Below the pieces are notes generated by a model. The model saw only the letters and a program-made list of their open reading frames with translations. It searched no databases and was not told the origin of the DNA. A stretch of DNA of 63,534 nt, counting the filler, from Perkinsus chesapeaki ATCC PRA-425 (Eukaryota; Protista; Perkinsozoa): NCBI GenBank assembly GCA_013115145.1. It is 9 parts of 9 records of this genome, joined end to end, with 100 filler letters (N's around TTAATTAATTAA, not from the genome) between each part and the next. Parts side by side here need not be neighbours in the genome. Positions count along the whole stretch, not along the records: positions 1 to 23,806 come from JAAPAO010000558.1; 8 more parts are not named here. One strand, 5' to 3'. A program made the position numbers and the translations under genes. Below, one piece after another: positions 1 to 13,504 of the stretch (the first letter of the stretch is position 1; the number at the start of each line of letters is the position of its first letter).

Positions 1-72
1 CCTCCGGTGACCACAACTACTACCACCACACCTCCGGTGACCACAACTACTACCACCACACCTCCGGTGACC
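1..72 (+). repeat. 30-bp coding tandem repeat (PPVTTTTTTT)
   Basis: cctccggtgaccacaactactaccaccaca occurs about 2.4 times, directly visible. Confidence 0.9.
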
Positions 73-111
73 AGCTCGACAACGACCACCACTGCTACGT
101 TCCTTATCTAA
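1..111 (+). CDS. 3' end of a Thr/Pro-rich mucin-like protein (5' truncated by window edge)
   Basis: Frame 1 reads PPVTTTTTTT PPVTTTTTTT PPVTSSTTTTTATFLI* with TAA at 109-111. Confidence 0.7.
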   Translation, partial: PPVTTTTTTTPPVTTTTTTTPPVTSSTTTTTATFLI

Positions 112-1166
112 CTAATGTAGATTCGAGTGGCCTACATAATTTATTTATTCGATGGTATCCCCTGTAATTGAGATTAGTCTATTCATTGACTTTGTTGCGT
201 TTCTGGAGGTTCGAATTCGGGAGTACCTTTTCGAAGCGATACATACCCGGCACACGAGATTTCAAATAAAGTATCTGCGAACCCACCGAACATCTCGGCT
301 CGTTTAATTAATATTCGCTTCTACTCTTCCTCGCTCCAGAACAGCGTCAGTAGCCCTTCAGTCTTCCTTTACTGAACAGTTTTCCGAGGTACGTATGACT
401 TAGGCTTTTGGGAAGGCATGGAAAACTTGCTATCGATTTATCAGCGGATGCTAATCCATGCCTAGCCTGCCAGTCTTGCAAAGTCCGGTAGCTCGCTGGA
501 CAGATATAGCCGACGCCAAGGAATGAGGCACCATAAACGCTCAGAATGGAACGTGGTGGAAGTCATGCTGGGAACGATGGGTTTCGTAAGATGTCGGAGA
601 AAAGCGAAGGCTCGGCTAATGTAGCGCCTTCCAGAGAGGCTTTTCATGTTAAGAAAAGCTCGATAGCTCGAACGAAAAAGCGTCAAAAAATAGTACAACT
701 TTCTCCCTCTAAAACTTTCAGCGGGAGAACAATGACTTCGAAGGTGGTAGAACGCTTCTCCTAATGTAGCTACAGCAGTAGCTAGAGTGGCCAAGTCCCA
801 ATGTGATGTGTGTGAAACGCCGTGTTGTCAACATGCCTGCTTACACGAGTCCGTCGCGGCTACGAGTCCCAATATGCGTAACGTATTTCTCCCATTAATT
901 TGGTTCACGCATACGGAGTGACGTAATGCAAGACTAGTATCGATAAGTGACATTATCTCTGATGAGTTGCCTGCCAAAGGAACGAATGCACTCCACGTTA
1001 TGGACACATATATCGGTTTGAAGGTTCGAAGAGCAGTCCGAATAGTTTGGATACTTTGATATGTTTGTCCTTGAATAATCGTTTAAGTCACGTTGCGTAT
1101 GTGTGTAAGTTCTTATGCTTCTAACTAGGTAAAGACAACATGATAGTTCCCCGAAACGTGAATTAC

Positions 1167-1649
1167 TCACACCACTTGCGTAACAATGCCGCTCATAGCA
1201 TCGGCTTCAATAGCCTCGGCAAGCATAGAATCGCCAAATTTATGTTCCATGCGTGTTAACGCGTTATTAGCGAGGCTCACCGACCGACAGAGAACTCCGA
1301 CTGAAACCCAACCGGCAACGGTGGCACCTAAGCGAAAACCAGAAAAGAGGATCGCTCTTCTGTGTAGAATACCTGCAATCATCTTCGGGAGAAACGATCG
1401 ACCACGAAACAGGTAAGCCGCAGCAGCTGCAGAAAGATTGCTAATAATAAGTGAGTTTCCAGGAGGGTATCCTATCAATCCAAGAATCAGCAACATATAG
1501 AGTATCTCCCTGTGGCACCATTTACCGATCTTCTTTAAAGTAGTCTGCTGATCTCCGTTTGCACCACGGGTCTTTCTATCAACATGTATCCCGTGTAGTA
1601 ATCCTTCCATCGCGTCGGCTTGTACCTCGTAACAATTGTGTGATTTCAT
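1167..1649 (-). CDS. hypothetical protein, possibly membrane-associated
   Basis: 160-aa ATG ORF with hydrophobic stretches; no recognisable family. Confidence 0.3.
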   Translation of the reverse strand: MKSHNCYEVQADAMEGLLHGIHVDRKTRGANGDQQTTLKKIGKWCHREILYMLLILGLIGYPPGNSLIISNLSAAAAAYLFRGRSFLPKMIAGILHRRAILFSGFRLGATVAGWVSVGVLCRSVSLANNALTRMEHKFGDSMLAEAIEADAMSGIVTQVV

Positions 1650-1652
1650 AAG

Positions 1653-2420
1653 AATGCATTAATCGTCTACAAAGACCACAGCTTTATGCCCTTCTTTCCA
1701 TTCCAGTTCGTCAAGCTCATAACTCAAACGCGTGATATCCGTCTCATCATTCCGACGCCACAGGACGTCCCGAGCGAAGTTCTGATAGGCCTTTCGAACC
1801 TCCAGAGGCTGAAATAGAAATATTCGATGAGAATTCTAAACGTTGGGCTTCAAAGTTTTACTGTATGAAGGGGAAACGCGTAATGTGAATATCCGACACA
1901 ACCCCATGACATTTCACCACACTATTGAATTATGGTAAAGAGTTGATATATCAACTGAAGGATATGATTACTTCTTGGCTTAACCGTCGTTGACTGTAGA
2001 CAAAATCCTCCAAATGCCAACGAGTATCCTTTTGTTCTTGTTCTGACTGTACATAATACTTGGGATATTCTGAATGAAAATGATGGGATGAAAACCTCTT
2101 AACTGCCTCACCATCGTCTGGTGTTTTATAAAGTCCGGTTTTCTTAAAGAATTCGAACCATCGCCAAGTTGGCATTAACGGTGATGGGCAATATCCACAT
2201 TCTCCACTCAGTGCGGCAACAAGTCGCGCTGTCTGACAGTTAAAATGATGTGATGTCAGTATTCTTCGCCGTGCGAGAGATACTTCATATTCTGGTAGGT
2301 CTTCTCCGACTAATCGTCTATATGCTCGACAACAGCTGCTGTAGAAGAATCGATTCAATTGTCCAGGAATAGATAACCCTTCTTTAGACCTGTTTGATGG
2401 AAGTTAACCTTTATTCTTGG
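1653..2420 (-). CDS. hypothetical multi-exon protein divergent from eIF5A
   Basis: ORF 1951-2358 extends upstream to about 2400. An exon-like piece near 1653-1810 reads QPLEVRKAYQNFARDVLWRR...VVFVDD*. Family not recognised. Confidence 0.35.
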
Positions 2421-2954
2421 ACAAGGGTGGTGCTACCGATAAAAATGAGAGAATACTCTAAATGCATTGTCAAGTCTTGGTTGATCTTTTCTTAATATGC
2501 AATAGTCCCACTCTTCAGGTGTTCGTGCTGCATATATTTGAGTAGTCGTTGTTAAAGAGTGTATGAAGGCTCGAAGCTACAGTTAGTATTAACAAACAAA
2601 TAGCATTTATAACGTATTTACATCGTCTAGTTTTTGAGGTTTCCCTTCAATCGAGAGTGGTACAATTGTCACATTATAAGACAATCGACGGCCGCCAACA
2701 TTCCTCAGAATCTCATCGTTCTCTGTTGACATCAATCAACTTCTATTCACAACAACACCGTACGCTCATTCAAAGTCCTGACAGTTCTGTGGCGTGCGCT
2801 TTTTCCAGTTAGCGCGATCGATTATATAAGTTTCGGCGATATTGGCAAATGTTTTGCGCTATGTGCAAGTATACGTCGGAGCGACCGTCGTTTGAGAAAG
2901 TTCATTTTGATAATTTAGGGTGTGCTGTTTTATCCGTGTTGCCACTACTTAAGT

Positions 2955-3545
2955 ATGTCCTCTGAAGACGAGCCAACTTTCGAGCAAGCTGATGCCGGTG
3001 CCTCCCATACCGCCCCTCAGCAGGCCGGTACCCTCCGTAAGGGTGGCTTTGTTATGCTCAAGGGTAACACAAATTATACCTTTATTTTATTTTATATTAT
3101 AATTTTAGGTAAGCCATGCAAGATCGTGGATATTTCTACTTCTAAGACTGGCAAGCACGGACACGCCAAGGCTAACATCACTGGCCTAGATATCTTTACG
3201 GGAAGGAAGTATGAGGATATCTGCCCTACTTCTCATAACATGGAGGTAATTTATCATCATCATTCTTAGATACGTATAGTATTTTGAATATGATTATTAT
3301 CTCAGGTCCCCAATGTTGTACGTGCTGAGTACCAGCTATTGAATGTTGACGAGTCTGGTGCTGTATCCCTCCTCAATGATGATGCCACTACTAAGGATGA
3401 TCTCGATCTCCCTAAGAACGAAAATGGTATTGACGAGGTCGGACAACAAATCCAGAACGATTTCAATGAGGGCAAGGGTGTTATCGTTACCGTCATTGCT
3501 GCCTGTGGCCAAGAGAAGATCGTATCTTCGAAGACCATTGAGTAA
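2955..3545 (+). CDS. eIF5A: eukaryotic translation initiation factor 5A
   Basis: Exons 2955-3063, 3109-3245 and 3306-3545 with GT-AG introns of 45 and 60 nt. Hypusine motif [12 protein letters not shown] is intact. Confidence 0.97.
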
Positions 3546-4215
3546 ATAATAATATTGAAAAATGTGTTCATGTTGGTGGTTAAGAAGAATATTGTCTGCT
3601 GCTCCGAAATCATGTCTCGTCGTCTTGGCATACTTATGGTATTCTGGCGCTATTACGTATCTCCGTATCTCCTACAACACTATTACTACTATCGAACTAT
3701 TTCCTGCTCCTAACTGCTGCTATATCTGCTGCTCACTACTACGTTAACTATCGTATTAAGAGATAACTTATCTTAGCATTATTCTGCTATGTTGTTGTCC
3801 TTCGATAGTATCAACTATTACTGCTGCTGCTGCTGATCTTACCAGTAGGGCGACTGCGGTTGTCACTTCTATAGTGGTTCCGGTGTCGGAGTTGGCGCAT
3901 TTGGAACCGAGCACATTTGGGGATTATGATGTCATAACCTTTATAACCGCACGATTCAGCGCTTTTGGTGATGAGTTGATTTATTTTCAATTAATGATTC
4001 ACGAATATGCAACGGATAGTTGAGTGTTACATCAGTTAACAACGGTAAGAGTATCTTTTATCACCGGTCTCGAGGTTTTGTATTCGGAGGTGGTGTCGGT
4101 TAAAACCACAACCCCTGCTCCTCCCGCTCTACGGGAGGTTAGATCGCTTAAGTGTTATTTACTTTACCTCAAACTCATCGTAAAGATATGAGTTATAGAC
4201 AACAACAACAACAAA

Positions 4216-4455
4216 TCATGGTTTATTCACATCATCGTCATCTTCACCAGTTGGTGGCACTCTAAGCTTCTGGCGGGTATATCCGTACTTATCTGTGTCA
4301 CCTTCGCCTGTTTGGGTGTAAGCATCAATTGGTTCACTGTCGAATCGTTTGTAATGAATGCCATTTCTAAAGCGAGGCCAGCAACCGCCGAAGACACCTT
4401 TAATACACGACAGAAGGTTGGGGGTTTTCTTCTTCTTCTTCTTCATCTTCGCCAT
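4216..4455 (-). CDS. small hypothetical protein
   Basis: ATG ORF MAKMKKKKKKTPNLLSCIKG...DDDDVNKP*; no family recognised. Confidence 0.4.
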   Translation of the reverse strand: MAKMKKKKKKTPNLLSCIKGVFGGCWPRFRNGIHYKRFDSEPIDAYTQTGEGDTDKYGYTRQKLRVPPTGEDDDDVNKP

Positions 4456-4858
4456 TTCCTTTATTTCAGCACTTCCCTTTATAATATTAATAATAAATGT
4501 TATAATAATACCGCGGATCAATAACATTATAACAATTGAGATAATATTGGAATATTAAATTACACAATTAATGGCGATGGCGAGAAATTAAGGAGACGCC
4601 AAATGATCGATTCGATGTGACTTGCAAGTTTAAGAATGGAATAGGCACTAATGACATCAATGATGTACTTAACGTACTTTCAGATGTATTAATTTAACAC
4701 GTCAAATGGTGTGGTGGCCACATGATAGGATCCTTTTCTGAACACTATTGGGCCAAAAATGTCATTCACTTGGATTAAATCCATTATGTGATGCATTAAT
4801 GTCATACACTTGAGAAATAAACAAGTTTGATTCAGGAAATTATGTACTTAATTTGTAC

Positions 4859-6492
4859 TCATATGAACCTTCGATCCATTAAAAGGCCCTTCACATAATA
4901 CACTTGAAACCATGCAGTGACGGCTAATGCAACAAAATCAAAAAGGAAGAACCACAGCACTCGCTGAAATAAAAAAAGAATACTTTATCACCACATTGAG
5001 CTTAATTACACTTTGCATTGATTCAACTGCCTTCAAATGGTTTTTCTGTCGAATCCATAAGTACGTACTTTCCGATTGCGTATCGCGAATCAAATTATCC
5101 AAAATCTGGCGAATCACATTGTTAGGCGATCCACTTGGTGTTTATGCCACTTCAATTTGGTCTTCCAAATCGGCGATGTGTTCCGTTTTCAAGCTTTTCG
5201 ATCCTCCCACCATAACAGCTAATGTAACCTTAAAATGAATATTAATAAAAATGTAGAGACGATGCTCACCTCATGTTCATCTCTCCAATTTCTATTTGTT
5301 ATAATTATTCGATATCTACAGGGGGACAACAACACACAGTTGATTACAGTGGGGGTAGATAGACCTCGTGTTGAAGAACTCGAACGAAAATAGGATTAAC
5401 CTCATCCGTGAACTCAGTTTTTCGTTTGATAATAAATGCATATATGCATAATAAATATATAAATATAAATATATACATAATGCAAATAATGCATTGATTG
5501 ATAGCCCTTCCGACATCGAATGGAATAGTTCGAAGAGCGATCGGTAAGGCTGGTGTACCCTACTTGCCAGAGACCTCAGCCTTTTTATAGAAAATAGCCT
5601 CTCCAGTATCCCTCTTCTCGAAAAAGACTTCTCCTTTTGGATTTAATATCTACACTTTCTTAAATGGAATATCATAAAAAATGGAACCTCCAAACCTGAA
5701 AATCAGTTCCCGTAGTTTCACCATCGGCCGAATACGATAGGAACAGCCCTAAAGGAGATAAATATCACATCCTCCACGCCAATTGCAGCACTTTCGAATG
5801 AGCGAGTAGAACTGGCCGCGGTCCGTAAACAACATCAATACACTTTATAAAGTTTTAATTCATACTTGGTTATTCCTACCATCCGCAATCGTATACTATA
5901 CAGAGGAAGATACGCTTACAAGTGTTGAGTTCTCTAGACATATATGTAGAACCCCAACTGTGAACCCACGAATGATGGGAGAAGGATAGAAGAACCGATG
6001 GCCAGGTAGGAAAATTTGTTCGATCTGGTGACAACAAACTGGCGAAAAAAAACCATCTCGCGAATCGAGAGACGGACGTTATTGGATTTCATGTCATTTA
6101 TGAACATATTAAAACTTTAATAACTTTCGTAGTAATTTATTCTGTTTTAATATCTCCCGCTTTCCCCGCGTGAATATATAACCTCTCAGTAGCTGTCCTG
6201 GTATGGTGACGTCTTCTGTAAACTCTTGTATGGAATTAGGATTCACTGTAAATGTCATCATCATATTCGGATGGAAGTCTAACTTATAACCGACTAACTA
6301 TTTGATCCTATTTGTTCCCAAACCTTCCAAGTGTGCCTCCCAGTCATGATAGAAATCACCCTCTCCTCCTCCTTCTCCATCTAAGCCAATATCATGACGA
6401 CCATAATACCTAAAAAGGCACACCTGAATCCCTCTAAAAGCGGCGGCGGCGGCCTCGAGAAATACGGAGAAGGAATAAATGTCTTGTTCCAT
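4859..6492 (-). CDS. p24/emp24/TMED family GOLD-domain cargo receptor
   Basis: Spliced model gives ...MTFTVNPNSIQEFTEDV...LLRG|LFLSY...TDFQ|ILNPKGEVFFEKR...GK|YRIIITNRNW..|VTLAVMVGG..coiled coil..STYLWIRQKNHLKAVESMQS|RVLWFFLFDFVALAVTAWFQVYYVKGLLMDRRFI*, the typical GOLD + coiled coil + TM + short tail. Start codon uncertain. Confidence 0.8.
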
Positions 6493-6569
6493 TCTGGATT
6501 GATCTAACTTTCGTACAAACGTGCGGATAGACTTGTAGTAATAAATTGTCGCAGTTGATCACTTATTTA

Positions 6570-7127
6570 TCCCAAAGAAAAGGAACAGCAACCTGTTCAT
6601 ACAAGAATGTAAGTTGCATGTCATGACGGACTACTCGCACTAGTATCATCATCATCATGGTGGTGGTGGTGTACGGTGACGACCACACGTAAGCTGCTTA
6701 CCGGTCTTCATCTTCCTCATTGTTAAAACGATGATTCTCATCTTGCCTGGAAGCATATTGGAAATATCGAGTAAATAGAAACTGCTACTGCTGCTGCTGC
6801 AGTACTCACCTGTCTTCTATTGAATCTGAGTGGTCCCCCATAACACCGCCAACCATACCACCACCACCCAACAACAACTGTGGGGAGAGCGGAGAGGATT
6901 AACACGCAAATAGTTATCTTGTTTATCTTTACCATCCTCGACGTTAGTGTCATAGCCGTTGTTGTTCTCAGTCGTTCTTTATAACCATTAAACCCTCCGA
7001 AGACCATCAAATAGTAGATGATGACGACGACGACCTTCATTGTGCTAAATGGCGGCAATCTGCTAATTTGGAGAACTCGTGCCCGACTCTGACCATAAAA
7101 GTAACCCAACAACACATCGATAACCAC
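6570..7127 (-). CDS. hypothetical multi-exon membrane protein (partial model)
   Basis: Hydrophobic ORF 6738-7127 plus exon-like pieces with GT/AG borders; family not recognised. Confidence 0.3.
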
Positions 7128-8340
7128 AATAATAATAATAATAACCTGACCTTAATGGAGAGGTGAACAGCAGAAGCAGCAGCTGATGATGATGACTGAT
7201 GATGACTCCCTTATATATTAGGCCAGGTAGCATAGATGTTTATCGAGACGTGCTCATAAGTTGAGTGGCGTATAGGTAATATAAAGCAGGGGGAGTGAGA
7301 CCGAGGGAAGTTGGGATGGAGTTGGGCATCCGTAAGTCATGTACAATGTCATCATTTCAGGGTAACTAAGCTTACCCTCCTCCTCTGATGTGGAGGAGGA
7401 GGAATAACCATCCTATTAACAACCACAAGCAAGCTTACCATGCTAATATTGTGCATGGTATCGACTTAGTTAATTGGTTAACCCAGTCCATTCAGCAATG
7501 ATACCACCATTCATCATACTCGCAATGGCGTATCAACCGAACAGTACAATATCGTAGTCCCTCAAGTTGCTATATTACGACCATCAACGAGCTAGCGTCA
7601 TCCCCATCACTCTTAACATCATCGATTCTAACCATTGGTAACCAACTACCCAGGGGAGGGGTAATCCTACAGACATCGTCTACCAATAATACGACAACGA
7701 ATGATGAAAATATAATATCGAGTGTCAAGGTAATTAAACTGTTATTGAACTCAAAAAGAGGTATGACTATTGGAAACTTGGTATGACAATGACTACGATA
7801 ATATCGACGACGACAACGACGACTGGCACGGAATACATTTTCCGATGATTGTCGTTGAAAACAATTACAATAGTATTGAGAGTTGTAAATATTTGTCAAA
7901 AACCGTTAAATGGTTCGACGAAAAGTACAGCAATCAATTAGGAAAAATCCGCAACTCACCACCACCATCACCACGAGAATGTCGAATAACAATAATCAAC
8001 GCTATGGACATATAAAATGTGGATATTAGAAGGCCGATGACGATTTAGTAACAGCAGCAGCATCAACAGTAACAGTAAAACTCTAGGGAGCAAACTTTGA
8101 TCCTTCGAACTCGGGATTTAATATTTCGTTTATCCAAAAAATATACCCGATGAAAACTACATCGTTACCGTCATCGCCAATCATCGTCGCCTCATAAGCA
8201 ACCGTCATTTTAATTAATCCGATGATGGTGTTTGGGAAATGACAGCATCAACAACAACTACTTTGAACGAGGCTTCACAGCACCATCAAAAGCCGAGGGT
8301 TCTGATAACAATGATAGAGTCAGTGAGAACAGCAGCTAGC

Positions 8341-9707
8341 TCAAATCCTACCCTTTTCAACCTCAGCAACGGCCTTCTTGGCGGGGGCGGCAGTCTCGCC
8401 CTTCTTGGCAGGGGCGGCGGCCTCGGCCTTCTTGGCAGGGGCGGCAGTCTCGGCCTTCTTGGCAGGGGCGGCGGCCTCGGCCTTCTTGGCAGGGGCGGCA
8501 GTCTCGGCCTTCTTGGCGGGGGCGGCGACCTCGGCCTTCTTGGCGGGGGCGGCGACCTCGGCCTTCTTGGCAGGGGCGGCAGTCTCGGCCTTCTTGGCAG
8601 GGGCGGCGGCCTCGGTTTCTGCATTCTCAGACTTCATAGGGGCTTCATCAGTAGTAGCTACCAAAACACATCCACTCTGATTAACCTTTATAATGCTGAT
8701 TACCTTTAGCAGAGCTGCGGTTGCTACGATTGCGACGAGTGTTCTTACGAGCCTTCTTCTTAGAAGCAGCGGCCTCGTCAACCTGGTCAGCGGCGGCGTC
8801 GGCGGGAGTGGTGGCCTTCTTCTCCTTAATAGCGGCAATATCGGCCTTGGTGGCGATTGGTACACGACTAGAATAAGACAATCAAACTACAACTTACTGA
8901 CGGAGGAGGACCGGCGGCGGCTTACGTATTTCTGGGGCGTCTACTGACGGTAGACTTATCAATGAGTCCCTTAGGGTGAGTAATAGTCACAACAAGGAAT
9001 GGAACAATACGAGTCGCAATGACGGTCTGATGATGATAATAAAGGTCAGCAAATACCCAGGCTTCTTACTTCGTGTGTTTCATCAACACTAACGTATTCA
9101 TCATTAACATCTGTAGAACCAAGTTCAACCTAACTCATAATTCATTATCAATTCATAATAACACCTTGACACTTACATCCTGTTCAAGATCAGGTATCAT
9201 CCTATTGATCATCTCAGAAACAATAACTGCCTTGGCAATGGCCGGACCTACAAATGATAATGATAAGCAACAACAACAACAACTACCCTCATTACTGCTG
9301 TTGCTTACCTCTGGCCATGACTTTAATCTCGGGAATACCTTCGGTGGTATCAAGCAACTTCCTAACTCCTTCTTTAACAAACAATCCAACACCACCAGAA
9401 ACGGTAATACGAACTTCATGAGCAAGAGCTTGCTACAACAACAAAAAGGAAGATAAATAATAATAAACAGCAAGTCTTTTAAACTTACATCGTCCTTCTC
9501 CTCCCTGTTCCTCTGCACTCTTCTATATCTCTTAGAAGGGTTCAAAGCAGCAGTGGGCTCAGCCTTCGCCACTGGCGAAGTGACAACCTTCTCTGTGACA
9601 CCGGTTGATTGAGCTTCAGGCACGACGGTTGCAACCTTCTTCTCGGGGGTTGAAGGCGCAGCTGCCTCAGCCGCGGCTGGCTTAGTATTTTCAGTGCTTA
9701 CTGTCAT
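8341..9707 (-). CDS. Alba (Rpp25-type) domain protein with C-terminal PAKK repeat tail (Alba-A)
   Basis: Spliced exons give HEVRITVSGG...IKVMARG|PAIAKAVIVSEMINRMIPDLEQDV..ELGSTDV..TRIVPFLVVTI, an Alba fold signature. These are followed by a basic linker and nine AAPAKKxxx units, with stop at 8341. Confidence 0.85.
8365..8607 (-). repeat. 27-bp coding tandem repeat x9 (AAPAKKAE[T/V/A])
   Basis: Directly visible period of 27 nt. Confidence 0.95.
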
Positions 9708-9871: not shown

Positions 9872-9882
9872 CTAGGCGAGCG
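9872..9882. promoter_or_regulatory. CTAGGCGAGCG motif upstream of Alba-A
   Basis: The same core recurs upstream of Alba-B, Alba-C and the 59475 mucin gene. Confidence 0.4.
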
Positions 9883-10118: not shown

Positions 10119-11061
10119 TTAGGCGCCGACTTGTGGAGCTTCGGAGTTAACCTTCCCATTATCTGATACAAAAACCGTAAAATTGCGTTGCAAACATAAA
10201 CCCTTACCTTGCTCCTTCTTGCCCCCTTTGTTTCTACGGCGACGATCACGGCGCTGTTTCTTGACGGCAGAGTCGTCCTCTGTGGTGGAATCTGTATTAA
10301 GCAATACTTCCACAAACAAGTGACGTGCCTACCAGCACCGGCCTTCACAGGCGTGACTTCGACTGGCTTCGTTGGAGCATTCTTCCTATTCCTTGGACGG
10401 AAACGGTACCCCGATCGGCCAGCTGGACGACCCGAACGATAGCTTGGAGGCTCGGCGAGCACCGGACGCCTAAAATACGGTAAGTGAAGAACCGGAGAAC
10501 AAAGGTTATCTGACTTGATAAACTGGTGCTCTTTGACATCCTCTTCTTTAATTTCTTTACTGGCTCTTAAAGTGACGACCAAAGATGGCACAATGCGGAC
10601 TTGAGTCACATTGGTAACATCATCATCGTGTTCACCAACTGGCTCGAACACGTCCTCAACATCACTTGAACCAAGTTCCACCTGAACAAAAGACACCTGA
10701 CAACTCTAGTAAAGATCCTCCCACCTCTTGAGACAAAGAGGGGATACGACGGCTTAGAATCTCCGACACAATCACAGCCTTGGCAATGGCAGTACCTAAC
10801 AATACAAATAACTAACTTGATAGAGCCAAGGTCCAACCTCTAGCCATTATCCTGATCTCTTTGGTAGCAGTATGCTTCTCTGAACCAATAAAGTGTTCAA
10901 TGGCCTCATCAACAAAGGCATTAACACGACCCATGGAAGTGACTCTCACTTCCGTCACGCCGTCCTAAACATCAACAGTAGCCAAATGGAGAAGGGGTAC
11001 AAGATACCTCAGGAGCGGCTAAAGTTGGGCTCTTCTGCACACGTCGGAACTTGGTAACCAT
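10119..11061 (-). CDS. Alba (Rpp25-type) domain protein with Arg/Lys-rich tail (Alba-B)
   Basis: MVTKFRRVQKS..|DGVTEVRVTSMGRVNAFVDEAI..IRIMARG|TAIAKAVIVSEILSRRIPSLSQEV|ELGSSDVEDVFEP..QVRIVPSLVVTL; tail includes KKQRRDRRRRNKGGKK and ends APQVGA*. Confidence 0.85.
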
Positions 11062-11133: not shown

Positions 11134-11158
11134 GCGATCGGAAGACGCGCTCGCCCAG
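11134..11158. promoter_or_regulatory. GCGATCG and CGCTCGCCCAG motifs upstream of Alba-B
   Basis: GCGATCG at 11134-11140; CGCTCGCCCAG at 11148-11158. Confidence 0.4.
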
Positions 11159-11452: not shown

Positions 11453-12336
11453 TTAAGCTGCGACCTTGTTCTCATTCTCCTTCTTTCCGCTTTCCTTATT
11501 CTTCTCATCTAAAGAACAACATGCATTGAGGAATCACAAATAGTAAAACCCTCACTTTTAGTAGCTTCTCCGGATTTACCACGAGGACGATCGCTGCTAC
11601 GGCGACCACCACGACCTGAAATAATGTAAACGAAGACACCAAGGGACTTGCCTACCTTTGCCTTTGCCGCCCTTTCCTTTTCCACCTCCACGGCGACGTC
11701 CTTCACCGACAAGCTCTGGACGTCTGAGAAAGAAATTAAATTTAAAACGGTGTAAAAGTTAAAGGTTATCTACTCAACGAACTCATCGGGTTTAATAGCA
11801 TCTTTCTTGACCGCCTTGGTAGCCGTCAAAGTGATAACCAGGTAAGGTACAATACGAACCTGTTTTACCTGTTGAAAAAGAAGTGTGATAGTTATAATTT
11901 TGCATATGTCTTATTACATGTTCTTTTTCTTCATCATTAACAGGTTCATATTCCTCCTCGACATCGTTGCTACCAAGATCAACACTTTGCTTCAACCCAG
12001 GTATACGGCGAACGAGGATCTCCGAGACAATAACCGCCTTGGAGATCGCTCCACCTGAAATACGAAAATTCTATCAGAAATTGCACGTCATTGTTTACCT
12101 CTGGACATGATCTTGACGCTTTTACAGGCCTTGTGTTCTTCATCATCACCGAGGAACCAATGAATAGCTTCATCGACGAAGTTATTAACACGTCCAATTG
12201 AGGTAATACGAACCTCCCCATCTGCAGCCTGAAAACTATAAGTCTAAAACAGTTGGATTGTAAGATATTAAATAAGGCTCACCTCAGCTTTTTCAGTGGT
12301 CTTCTCAACACGACGATAAGTGGAACCAGTTACCAT
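11453..12336 (-). CDS. Alba (Rpp25-type) domain protein with Gly/Arg/Lys (RGG-like) tail (Alba-C)
   Basis: MVTGSTYRRVEK..|GEVRITSIGRVNNFVDEAI..VKIMSRG|AISKAVIVSEILVRRIPGLKQSVDLGSNDVEEEYEP..QVRIVPYLVITL; tail GRRRGGGKGKGGKGKGRGGRR..NKVAA*. Confidence 0.88.
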
Positions 12337-12495: not shown

Positions 12496-12553
12496 GCGAT
12501 CGCGTTCAACATTGAGAGATCCCAAAAATCGTCGACAAATTTCGCTCGCCTAG
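12496..12553. promoter_or_regulatory. GCGATCGC and CGCTCGCCTAG motifs upstream of Alba-C
   Basis: GCGATCGC at 12496-12503; CGCTCGCCTAG at 12543-12553. Confidence 0.4.
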
Positions 12554-12634: not shown

Positions 12635-13504
12635 TCAACGTCTACGTCGATTACGCATCGGTTGATGATGATGCGTCTCTTTTGTATCATCAATTCCATC
12701 GAGTAGGCCGCTATTGCCACTTTTCTTAGACTTCAGTCCGTCCGTAAAAGGATTGGCATTCGGAGGCGCCAGACTGGTGGTGCCAGTGAACACGCCCTCT
12801 GCTTTGCCTGTTGTAACTACGAGAACTCGAATTCGCACGAAGGGTTATTGAATAAGTCACCTTCGCCGGTGGAGCCGGATACGGGAGTGCTTCCAACACC
12901 ATCGTTTTCCGCGTCGCAGTAATCCCGAGATCCAAGGAAAAGACCAGACGACTGAAATAAAACCATACAAGCGAGTCACGCACAAGTGACAACTCACTCT
13001 CAAGGAAGATCTCCGCCGATTAACTCTCTCAGCCGCTCGCCCCGCTGCAGACCGAGTTGGCGGTCTCGGTCTTTTTTGAAGTTTTACTGGTGAAACAATT
13101 CCTGAACGAAAACCTACGAGTCTACTACGAATAAGGACGATGGTACTCCTGATAGTTGTAGGCGCTCGAGAGGCCACTTGGATGCCTGAGGTAGCACAAA
13201 ATTGGTATGAATTTGCACGCACGCGCACGACAGCACTTGCATCGCTGAGATCGCCTGGTTGAAGAGATCGACCATCAATTGCGTTATCAGTTTCATCAGC
13301 TGATTCGCTTGGTGGTGTTGTCGAGGGAAGAGTTTGGCCCAAGTGAGGAAGCCGGTCCAAAAGATGCATGGAAGAACCGTTGAAGGCCTGAAGTGATCAC
13401 ACTTATCATTGATTTATCTAAAGTATATAAACTGTGAAGGGGTGGAACCAAAATCTTACCTGATCAAAAGCACTATCATCCTCATCACTGTAGAGTTGGT
13501 TCAT
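12635..13504 (-). CDS. hypothetical low-complexity multi-exon protein
   Basis: First exon MNQLYSDEDDSAFDQ|gtaag; last exon ends ...QPMRNRRRR* at 12635; internal frame uncertain. Confidence 0.5.

Follow-up and report, generated by a model that had tools for sequence, protein, structure and literature searches.

A Perkinsus chesapeaki Alba-Family Gene With a Conserved Basic Patch and a Recently Expanded PAKK Repeat Tail

Introduction

Alba proteins of protists form small paralogous families, for example Plasmodium Alba1-4, Toxoplasma ALBA1/2, and Trypanosoma brucei ALBA1-4. All three Alba proteins of Plasmodium berghei co-purify with the DOZI/CITH translational-repression messenger ribonucleoprotein (mRNP), and the phylogeny in that study already took in Albas of Perkinsus marinus (PMC2820534). 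The ALBA proteins of T. brucei associate with mRNA in cytoplasmic granules (PMC3216647). Here, we report on an Alba-family gene of Perkinsus chesapeaki, FOL47_008579, located in a 63,534-nucleotide stretch of joined genome records (the window, along which all positions are counted unless another locus is named). A preliminary description of the window had noted an Alba core, a basic linker, and nine PAKK repeats in one gene, and had interpreted the product as a candidate chromatin-compacting protein of the HupB/histone H1 type. We find that the locus is an eight-exon minus-strand gene encoding a divergent eukaryotic Alba-family protein, that the PAKK array is a recent, species-specific expansion, and that H1-style compaction is unlikely. 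The gene is already annotated but unstudied; its family is known and its tail is unusual.

As in other protists, the Perkinsus genes form a small family: FOL47_008579 (gene A) is one of three tandem paralogues (A, B, and C). TbALBA1 (7dl8) is among the structural matches of gene A, and paralogue C carries the RGG/GKG tail typical of protist Albas. Unlike these proteins, FOL47_008579 has no RGG box; its tail consists of an arginine-rich patch followed by nonapeptide repeats made of K, E, A, and P, and a 57-residue disordered extension precedes the core. Archaeal Albas (Sso10b and relatives) share its b1a1b2a2b3b4 fold and its G-x-AIxKAV helix and dimerize through a2, b3, and b4, as a model predicts for FOL47_008579, but they are about 90-100 amino acids long and have no tails.

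Another known design is that of mycobacterial HupB (MDP1) and the linker histones. PAKK and KAAK motifs are typical of H1/H5 and HupB tails; HupB, with an isoelectric point (pI) of 12.5, cannot bind DNA without its tail (PMC5676037). HupB and H1 with its C-terminal domain combine a nucleic acid-binding dimeric core with a disordered Ala/Pro/Lys tail containing PAKK, as FOL47_008579 is predicted to do. The core of FOL47_008579 is an Alba domain instead of an HU or winged-helix domain, every repeat contains a glutamate, and the pI of the whole protein is 9.6.

The Rpp20/Pop7 and Rpp25/Pop6 subunits of RNase P/MRP are also among the best structural matches of FOL47_008579. Genes in several tandem copies and with basic tails, such as the Perkinsus triplet, are unusual for subunits of this kind.

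Gene Structure and 3' End

The coding sequence runs from 9707 to 8258 on the minus strand and encodes 362 amino acids in eight exons. Its translation is identical, letter for letter, to the database protein FOL47_008579 [Perkinsus chesapeaki] (P0012), on which the whole-protein analyses were run; the exons were otherwise searched one by one.

Exon 1, 9489-9707, minus strand: ATG at 9707, 73 codons; a disordered A/P/T/E/K-rich N-terminal extension, then conserved RYRRVQRNREEKDD
Exon 2, 9309-9432, minus strand: Alba b1, a1, and b2 (...HEVRITVSGG...EIKVMARG)
Exon 3, 9177-9247, minus strand: Alba helix a2, bearing the family's G-P-AIAKAV signature; dimer interface in the model
Exon 4, 9070-9129, minus strand: Alba strand b3 (VELGSTDVNDEYVSVDETHE)
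Exon 5, 8926-9026, minus strand: Alba strand b4 (TVIATRIVPFLVVTITH...) and start of the linker; strand 159-174 in the model
Exon 6, 8704-8867, minus strand: conserved RVPIATKADIAAIKEK, an acidic A-rich spacer, and the K/R patch KKKARKNTRRNRSNRSSAK
Exon 7, 8352-8657, minus strand: a short acidic lead-in, nine repeats of 27 nucleotides/9 amino acids (8613-8371), then VAEVEK
Exon 8, 8258-8301, minus strand: mini-exon encoding EPSAFDGAVKPRSK; stop codon TAG at 8260-8258

Exons 1-7 are joined by GT..AG introns of 43-61 nucleotides with an unbroken frame, which bears out the preliminary view of one canonical-intron gene holding the core, the basic linker, and the nine repeats. The 3' end given there was a TGA at 8343-8341 (protein ending in ...EKGRI). 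This codon is intronic, because exon 8 is conserved and reproduces P0012 exactly, so that the coding sequence continues through exon 8 to 8258. Exons 7 and 8 are separated by a 50-nucleotide intron (8351-8302), with the donor after 8352 (AAG G/GTAGG) and an AG before the mini-exon. The Perkinsus olseni orthologue also terminates in a mini-exon, encoding EPSAFDGAVNPRAK followed by the stop, and in a three-way DNA alignment the mini-exon (8301-8258) is conserved relative to P. olseni while the intron before it is divergent.

One small public sequencing run, whose type ("RNA?") is a guess, holds part of the stretch. Spliced contigs of this run skip 9308-9248, 9176-9130, and 9069-9027, which are exactly introns 2, 3, and 4, and one of them has 0 mismatches over 162 nucleotides. 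Contigs thus confirm splicing at these three introns, and the junction to exon 7 rests on comparison between species. A second spliced contig (9196-9431 of the window, exons 2-3) is ~8% divergent and may come from a divergent allele or haplotype or from a related organism. The repeat exon 7 is unique in the P. chesapeaki genome and gene A is single-copy. An open reading frame on the plus strand (8239-8709, GGGLGLLGRGG...) was rejected as a gene, being the antisense reading of the repeat array.

The Alba Core

The preliminary description identified the core as Alba, and profile, fold, and structural matches all agree with this. Pfam PF01918 (Alba) matches P0012 at residues 79-137 with 25.5 bits against a cut-off of 25. 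Seven exon peptides searched separately, each too short, gave no Alba match in Pfam, and a six-frame PF01918 scan of the genome (41.7 Mb, 3544 contigs) missed FOL47_008579, finding only its two neighbors and a fourth gene. Paralogue B aligns collinearly with exons 2, 3, and 4 in tblastn (linked E 9e-9); exon 3 is 68% identical to it, and exon 2 aligns to its residues 23-61. Archaeal Alba sequences match at E 0.014-0.2, a marginal similarity. The helix a2 motif ARGPAIAKAV (residues 113-122) is invariant in the orthologues and paralogues and aligns with GRAISKAV of archaeal Alba 8xao_A.

An AlphaFold2 (AF2) model, built from an alignment of eight sequences, places b1 at residues 79-82, a1 at 88-101, b2 at 108-114, a2 at 115-131, b3 at 136-152, and b4 at 159-174, with per-residue confidence (pLDDT) of 71-91. 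The pLDDT falls below 50 for residues 1-51 and 243-358 and is about 30 in the exon 7 repeats. Searched against the PDB with Foldseek, the model has Alba, Rpp20/25, or Pop6/7 proteins as all 41 of its best matches. The top ones are RPP20/RPP25, archaeal Alba, yeast Pop6/Pop7, T. brucei ALBA1, and rice Alba (E down to 5e-7, TM-score by target 0.6-0.86), scores at which Foldseek cannot separate Alba subfamilies.

The Alba-fold core, residues about 79-174, is predicted to form a symmetric dimer through a2 and b3/b4. A homodimer model of residues 58-192 reached an ipSAE of 0.43 versus 0.01 for the best control, a score that may reflect memory of solved Alba dimers; among solved structures, 21 of 30 homodimers and 0 of 23 monomers come up to the mark used for ipSAE. 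The partner pLDDT is 80 or higher, agreement between runs extends to at least 89% of contacts, and the modeled interface comprises residues 115-127, 137-143, and 165-171.

Basic Patch and Repeat Array

Two basic elements follow the core. The K/R patch KKKARKNTRRNRSNRSSAK lies at 8761-8705 (residues 228-246) and has a net charge of +10 over 19 amino acids. It is conserved: P. olseni has SKRKNRRSRRARRGSPK and paralogue B has KKQRRDRRRRNKGGKK. The strongly basic element that is truly conserved is this 19-residue patch rather than the repeats.

The repeat array is real and far beyond chance. Tandem Repeats Finder reports it at 8370-8615 with a 27-nucleotide period, 9.1 copies, 90% matches, and a score of 394. 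Nine units of E[A/T/V]AAPAKK[A/G] occupy 8613-8371, with PAKK present nine times. At the DNA level the units differ just at the second codon (GCC/ACT/GTC), at one synonymous proline position, and by one GCC>GGC change; the near-identity of the units indicates a young array produced by recent expansion. The array has a single open frame and G+C-rich third codon positions, as expected of coding sequence. Its 80 residues include 18 K and 9 E (23% K, 11% E), with a net charge of +9, or +0.11 per residue, and a pI of 9.9. The caveat in the preliminary description that the repeats are weakly basic was therefore justified, with a glutamate in every unit.

Other Alba proteins with a PAKK tail had been suggested as a target for searching. 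Among proteins of 199-633 amino acids, a word-indexed search with scoring over residues 256-348 turned up no further Alba protein carrying this tail; three other proteins carry the motif, and all are ribosomal (two uS2, P0013 and P0014, and one eS6, P0015). These have nearly the same nonapeptide, (A/T)PAKKAE, in tandem and C-terminal of an RNA-binding core, and their last 100 residues carry +0.18 to +0.19 per residue. Their cores are unrelated to Alba and the organisms are presumably unrelated; the arrays on ribosomal proteins and on Alba are convergent low-complexity sequence, not homology. Searching the ESM Atlas with the tail yielded no feature match of use, and the structural matches (TM-score <0.36 on disordered models) were taken as meaningless. 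One weak second genomic match to the repeat (contig C2951) lies in masked or repetitive DNA and is not interpretable.

Comparison with P. olseni places the expansion in time. Its orthologues P0006 and P0007 were found by an HMMER search with exon 2, and a word search with P0006 returned P0012; P0010 and P0011 are further orthologues. Exons 2-5 and the first 17 residues of exon 6 are 91-98% identical to P. olseni at the protein level (exon 2 97.6%, exon 5 94%). Identity drops to 57% in exon 1, and exon 7 lacks any real counterpart there. Between the patch and the C-terminal peptide, P. olseni has a 65-residue K/E/P/T-rich stretch with a single EAAPAKPEV, no PAKK, a net charge of -3, and a pI of 5.0. 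The P. olseni N-terminus carries a different repeat, of 30 nucleotides (TEKKEVASPV; L005 2666-2824), in 4-7 copies that vary with isolate or assembly. Both disordered ends are thus repeat-prone and turn over fast, with different repeats in the sister species, and the PAKK array is a recent P. chesapeaki-specific expansion of a 27-nucleotide unit.

Several P. olseni models (P0010, 609 amino acids; P0011, 392 amino acids; L006 1636-5476) run the Alba gene together with the GOLD/EMP24 gene that lies downstream of it. Such fusions are probably annotation artefacts, and predicted models are therefore not fully reliable. Intron 3 of P. olseni (L005 3257-3322) is enlarged by a 12/22-nucleotide tandem repeat, GCGGTTTTTACA; the P. 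chesapeaki intron has 47 nucleotides.

Comparison With Linker Histones

Linker histones are still encoded in P. chesapeaki. We identified two canonical genes, intron-less, of 174 and 165 amino acids, each with a full globular domain (PF00538, 53 and 49 bits):

Contig C552 of the genome (G000), 68563-69087 (L011 1465-1989, plus strand): linker histone gene, PF00538
Contig C1291 of the genome (G000), 344-841 (L010, minus strand): linker histone gene, PF00538

Lys makes up 30-40% of their C-terminal tails, which have 0-1 acidic residues and net charges of +0.33 and +0.40 per residue. Of the features expected of a tail of the H1/HupB kind, the repeats show the PAKK/KAAK/SPKK-type motifs, here PAKK nine times. 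A high lysine content with near-zero acidic residues and ~+0.3 to +0.4 per residue was not found, as the repeats reach one third to one quarter of the charge density of the H1 tails of the same genome. Nor is the basic tail conserved in orthologues: the P. olseni proteins are without the array and have a net acidic tail, so that a basic PAKK tail is not a conserved design. Since Perkinsus retains canonical H1 genes, there is also no evident vacancy for a substitute. The proposal of a HupB/H1-like compactor does not stand well against this low charge density, the youth of the array and its absence from P. olseni, the ribosomal carriers of the motif, and the retained H1 genes. Its suggested relevance to the chromatin remodeling of dinoflagellates falls with it, as canonical linker histones are kept and the tail is neither strongly basic nor conserved.

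Probable Role and Alternatives

The most likely role of FOL47_008579, to which we assign a probability of roughly 0.6, is that of an RNA- or mRNP-binding Alba dimer whose arginine-rich patch is conserved and whose disordered ends are prone to repeats. We favor it because the Albas of P. berghei and T. brucei act in mRNPs. A homo- or heterodimer would bind RNA, in mRNPs and in translational control, like the characterized apicomplexan and trypanosome Albas. The arginine-rich patch would replace the RGG box as an auxiliary nucleic acid contact and might also direct nuclear import. Flexible and weakly basic, the K/E/A/P repeat tail would behave as a polyampholyte contributing modest non-specific affinity, solubility, or spacing at most; it would not act as a DNA-condensing module, and its effect would be minor or modulatory.

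Several points weigh against this RNA-binding role. The Pfam Alba score of P0012 is barely above the cut-off. The contigs cover introns 2-4 alone, and the junction to the repeat exon would follow from the reading frame, the intron position, exon 8, and the computational annotation. A tail of net +9 next to a patch of +10 would still raise the affinity for polyanions to some degree. The KKKARK within the patch fits a classical nuclear import signal. Because this motif resembles such a signal and some Plasmodium Albas bind DNA and telomeric chromatin (PMC3326326, PMC3273813), a nuclear role is possible.

One alternative is a chromatin compactor that would hold on to DNA by its Alba dimer and neutralize and condense it by its PAKK tail, as the tails of H1 and HupB do. 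The nine exact PAKK tetrapeptides, the homodimer model, and the strongly basic patch with its KKKARK would suit such a protein, and both archaeal Alba and PfAlba3 bind DNA (PMC3273813). We nevertheless consider it improbable, given a glutamate in each unit, a pI well below that of HupB, a charge density far below that of the H1 tails, a net acidic tail in P. olseni, a young array, and the same motif in ribosomal proteins. Similarly doubtful is a nucleolar or RNA-processing role, as a Pop7/Rpp20-type subunit or a ribosome-biogenesis factor whose tail would behave as C-terminal extensions do in ribosomal proteins. Human RPP20/RPP25 and yeast Pop6/Pop7 are among the best Foldseek matches, although this search does not tell Alba subfamilies apart. 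Paralogue B has sub-threshold Rpp20 matches of 19-21 bits in Pfam (PF12328 19.4 bits against a cut-off of 24.6), but P0012 has no PF12328 match at E<=1 and a six-frame scan of the genome with this profile found none. Arginine-rich patches often send proteins to nucleoli, and the sole other carriers of the repeat motif found are uS2 and eS6. On the other hand, three tandem paralogues, one of them RGG-tailed, resemble the mRNP-type Alba expansion of protists and not single-copy RNase P/MRP subunits.

It is very unlikely that the repeat exon lies outside the mature protein, either through retention of intron 6, which would end the protein after the basic patch with a stop after 7 codons (...SSAKGNQHYKG), or through an annotation that fuses separate units. 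No contig spans introns 5-7, and Perkinsus annotations do produce false fusions, as in P0010 and P0011. Yet the frame stays unbroken across GT..AG introns whose size is typical, and P. olseni has its phase-1 intron after the patch at an identical place in the alignment. The last 14 codons, conserved between the species, are in frame only through exon 7, and the coding-like character of the repeat argues in the same direction. A more speculative proposal, which we regard as a long shot, is that the patch and the new PAKK array made one copy of the triplet a linker-histone-like auxiliary chromatin or nucleolar protein, a very recent neofunctionalization seen relative to P. olseni. In a weaker variant, (A/T)PAKKAE arrays would have arisen repeatedly and convergently as a module that plays one and the same biophysical role on the RNA-binding cores of Alba, uS2, and eS6.

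The practical value of these findings is limited to a corrected 3' end and to the placement of the gene in a conserved Perkinsus tandem triplet. The locus is also a clear example of rapid turnover in the disordered ends of an Alba protein, with different repeats at opposite ends in sister species around a core that is ~95% identical. It opens no new route into the question of dinoflagellate chromatin remodeling. If tail-dependent chromatin binding were true, the tail would be a rare, datable compaction module born by repeat expansion.

The Tandem Alba Triplet and Its Shared Octamer

Gene A is the third of the three Alba paralogues, which lie on the same strand in the order C-B-A:

Paralogue B (FOL47_008580, P0001, 227 amino acids), 10119-11061, minus strand: Alba core and arginine-rich tail KKQRRDRRRRNKGGKK, no repeats; Pfam Alba 39.9 bits; exon map from tblastn
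Paralogue C, 11453-12336, minus strand: Alba core and RGG/GKG-type tail (the canonical protist form); exons read by eye, with tblastn; PF01918 match at 11972-12058, 21.9 bits

The six-frame PF01918 scan matched B at 10731-10799, C at 11972-12058, and one gene on another contig. A, B, and C all have the phase-1 intron that follows ...MARG. An intron before VELGS is common to A and B, while in C this junction lies inside one exon, and the intron before b4 is common to A and C. P. olseni keeps the order C-B-A, with a GOLD/EMP24 gene next in line. Genes C and B are present at the syntenic interval of P. marinus; protein searches gave no gene A orthologue there, and a 100-N scaffold gap in GG680063 (L004 9444-9543) occupies its expected site, so that loss cannot be claimed.

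The gene on the other contig (G000:C3035:7816-7914; L001 about 1465-2555, plus strand) is a fourth Alba gene, of another subtype with a GQAIPKAV motif. It has the best PF01918 score of the genome in the scan (37.8 bits), and its tail is Tyr/Gly/Lys-rich (YYYYYY, GKGKGKG).

An octamer, GGCGAGCG, occurs in four copies in the window versus 0.16 expected:

9875-9882, plus strand: octamer 168 nucleotides upstream of the gene A ATG, inverted relative to gene A
11148-11155, minus strand: octamer
12543-12550, minus strand: octamer
13034-13041, minus strand: octamer
L004 6463-6470 and 7914-7921: octamer copies in relatives
L005 1019-1026 and 2306-2313: octamer copies in relatives

Three of the copies in the window lie 87-207 nucleotides upstream of the ATGs of A, B, and C. 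Their placement and orientations, including the inversion at gene A, are kept in P. olseni and P. marinus, and we propose the octamer as a candidate shared promoter element of the triplet.

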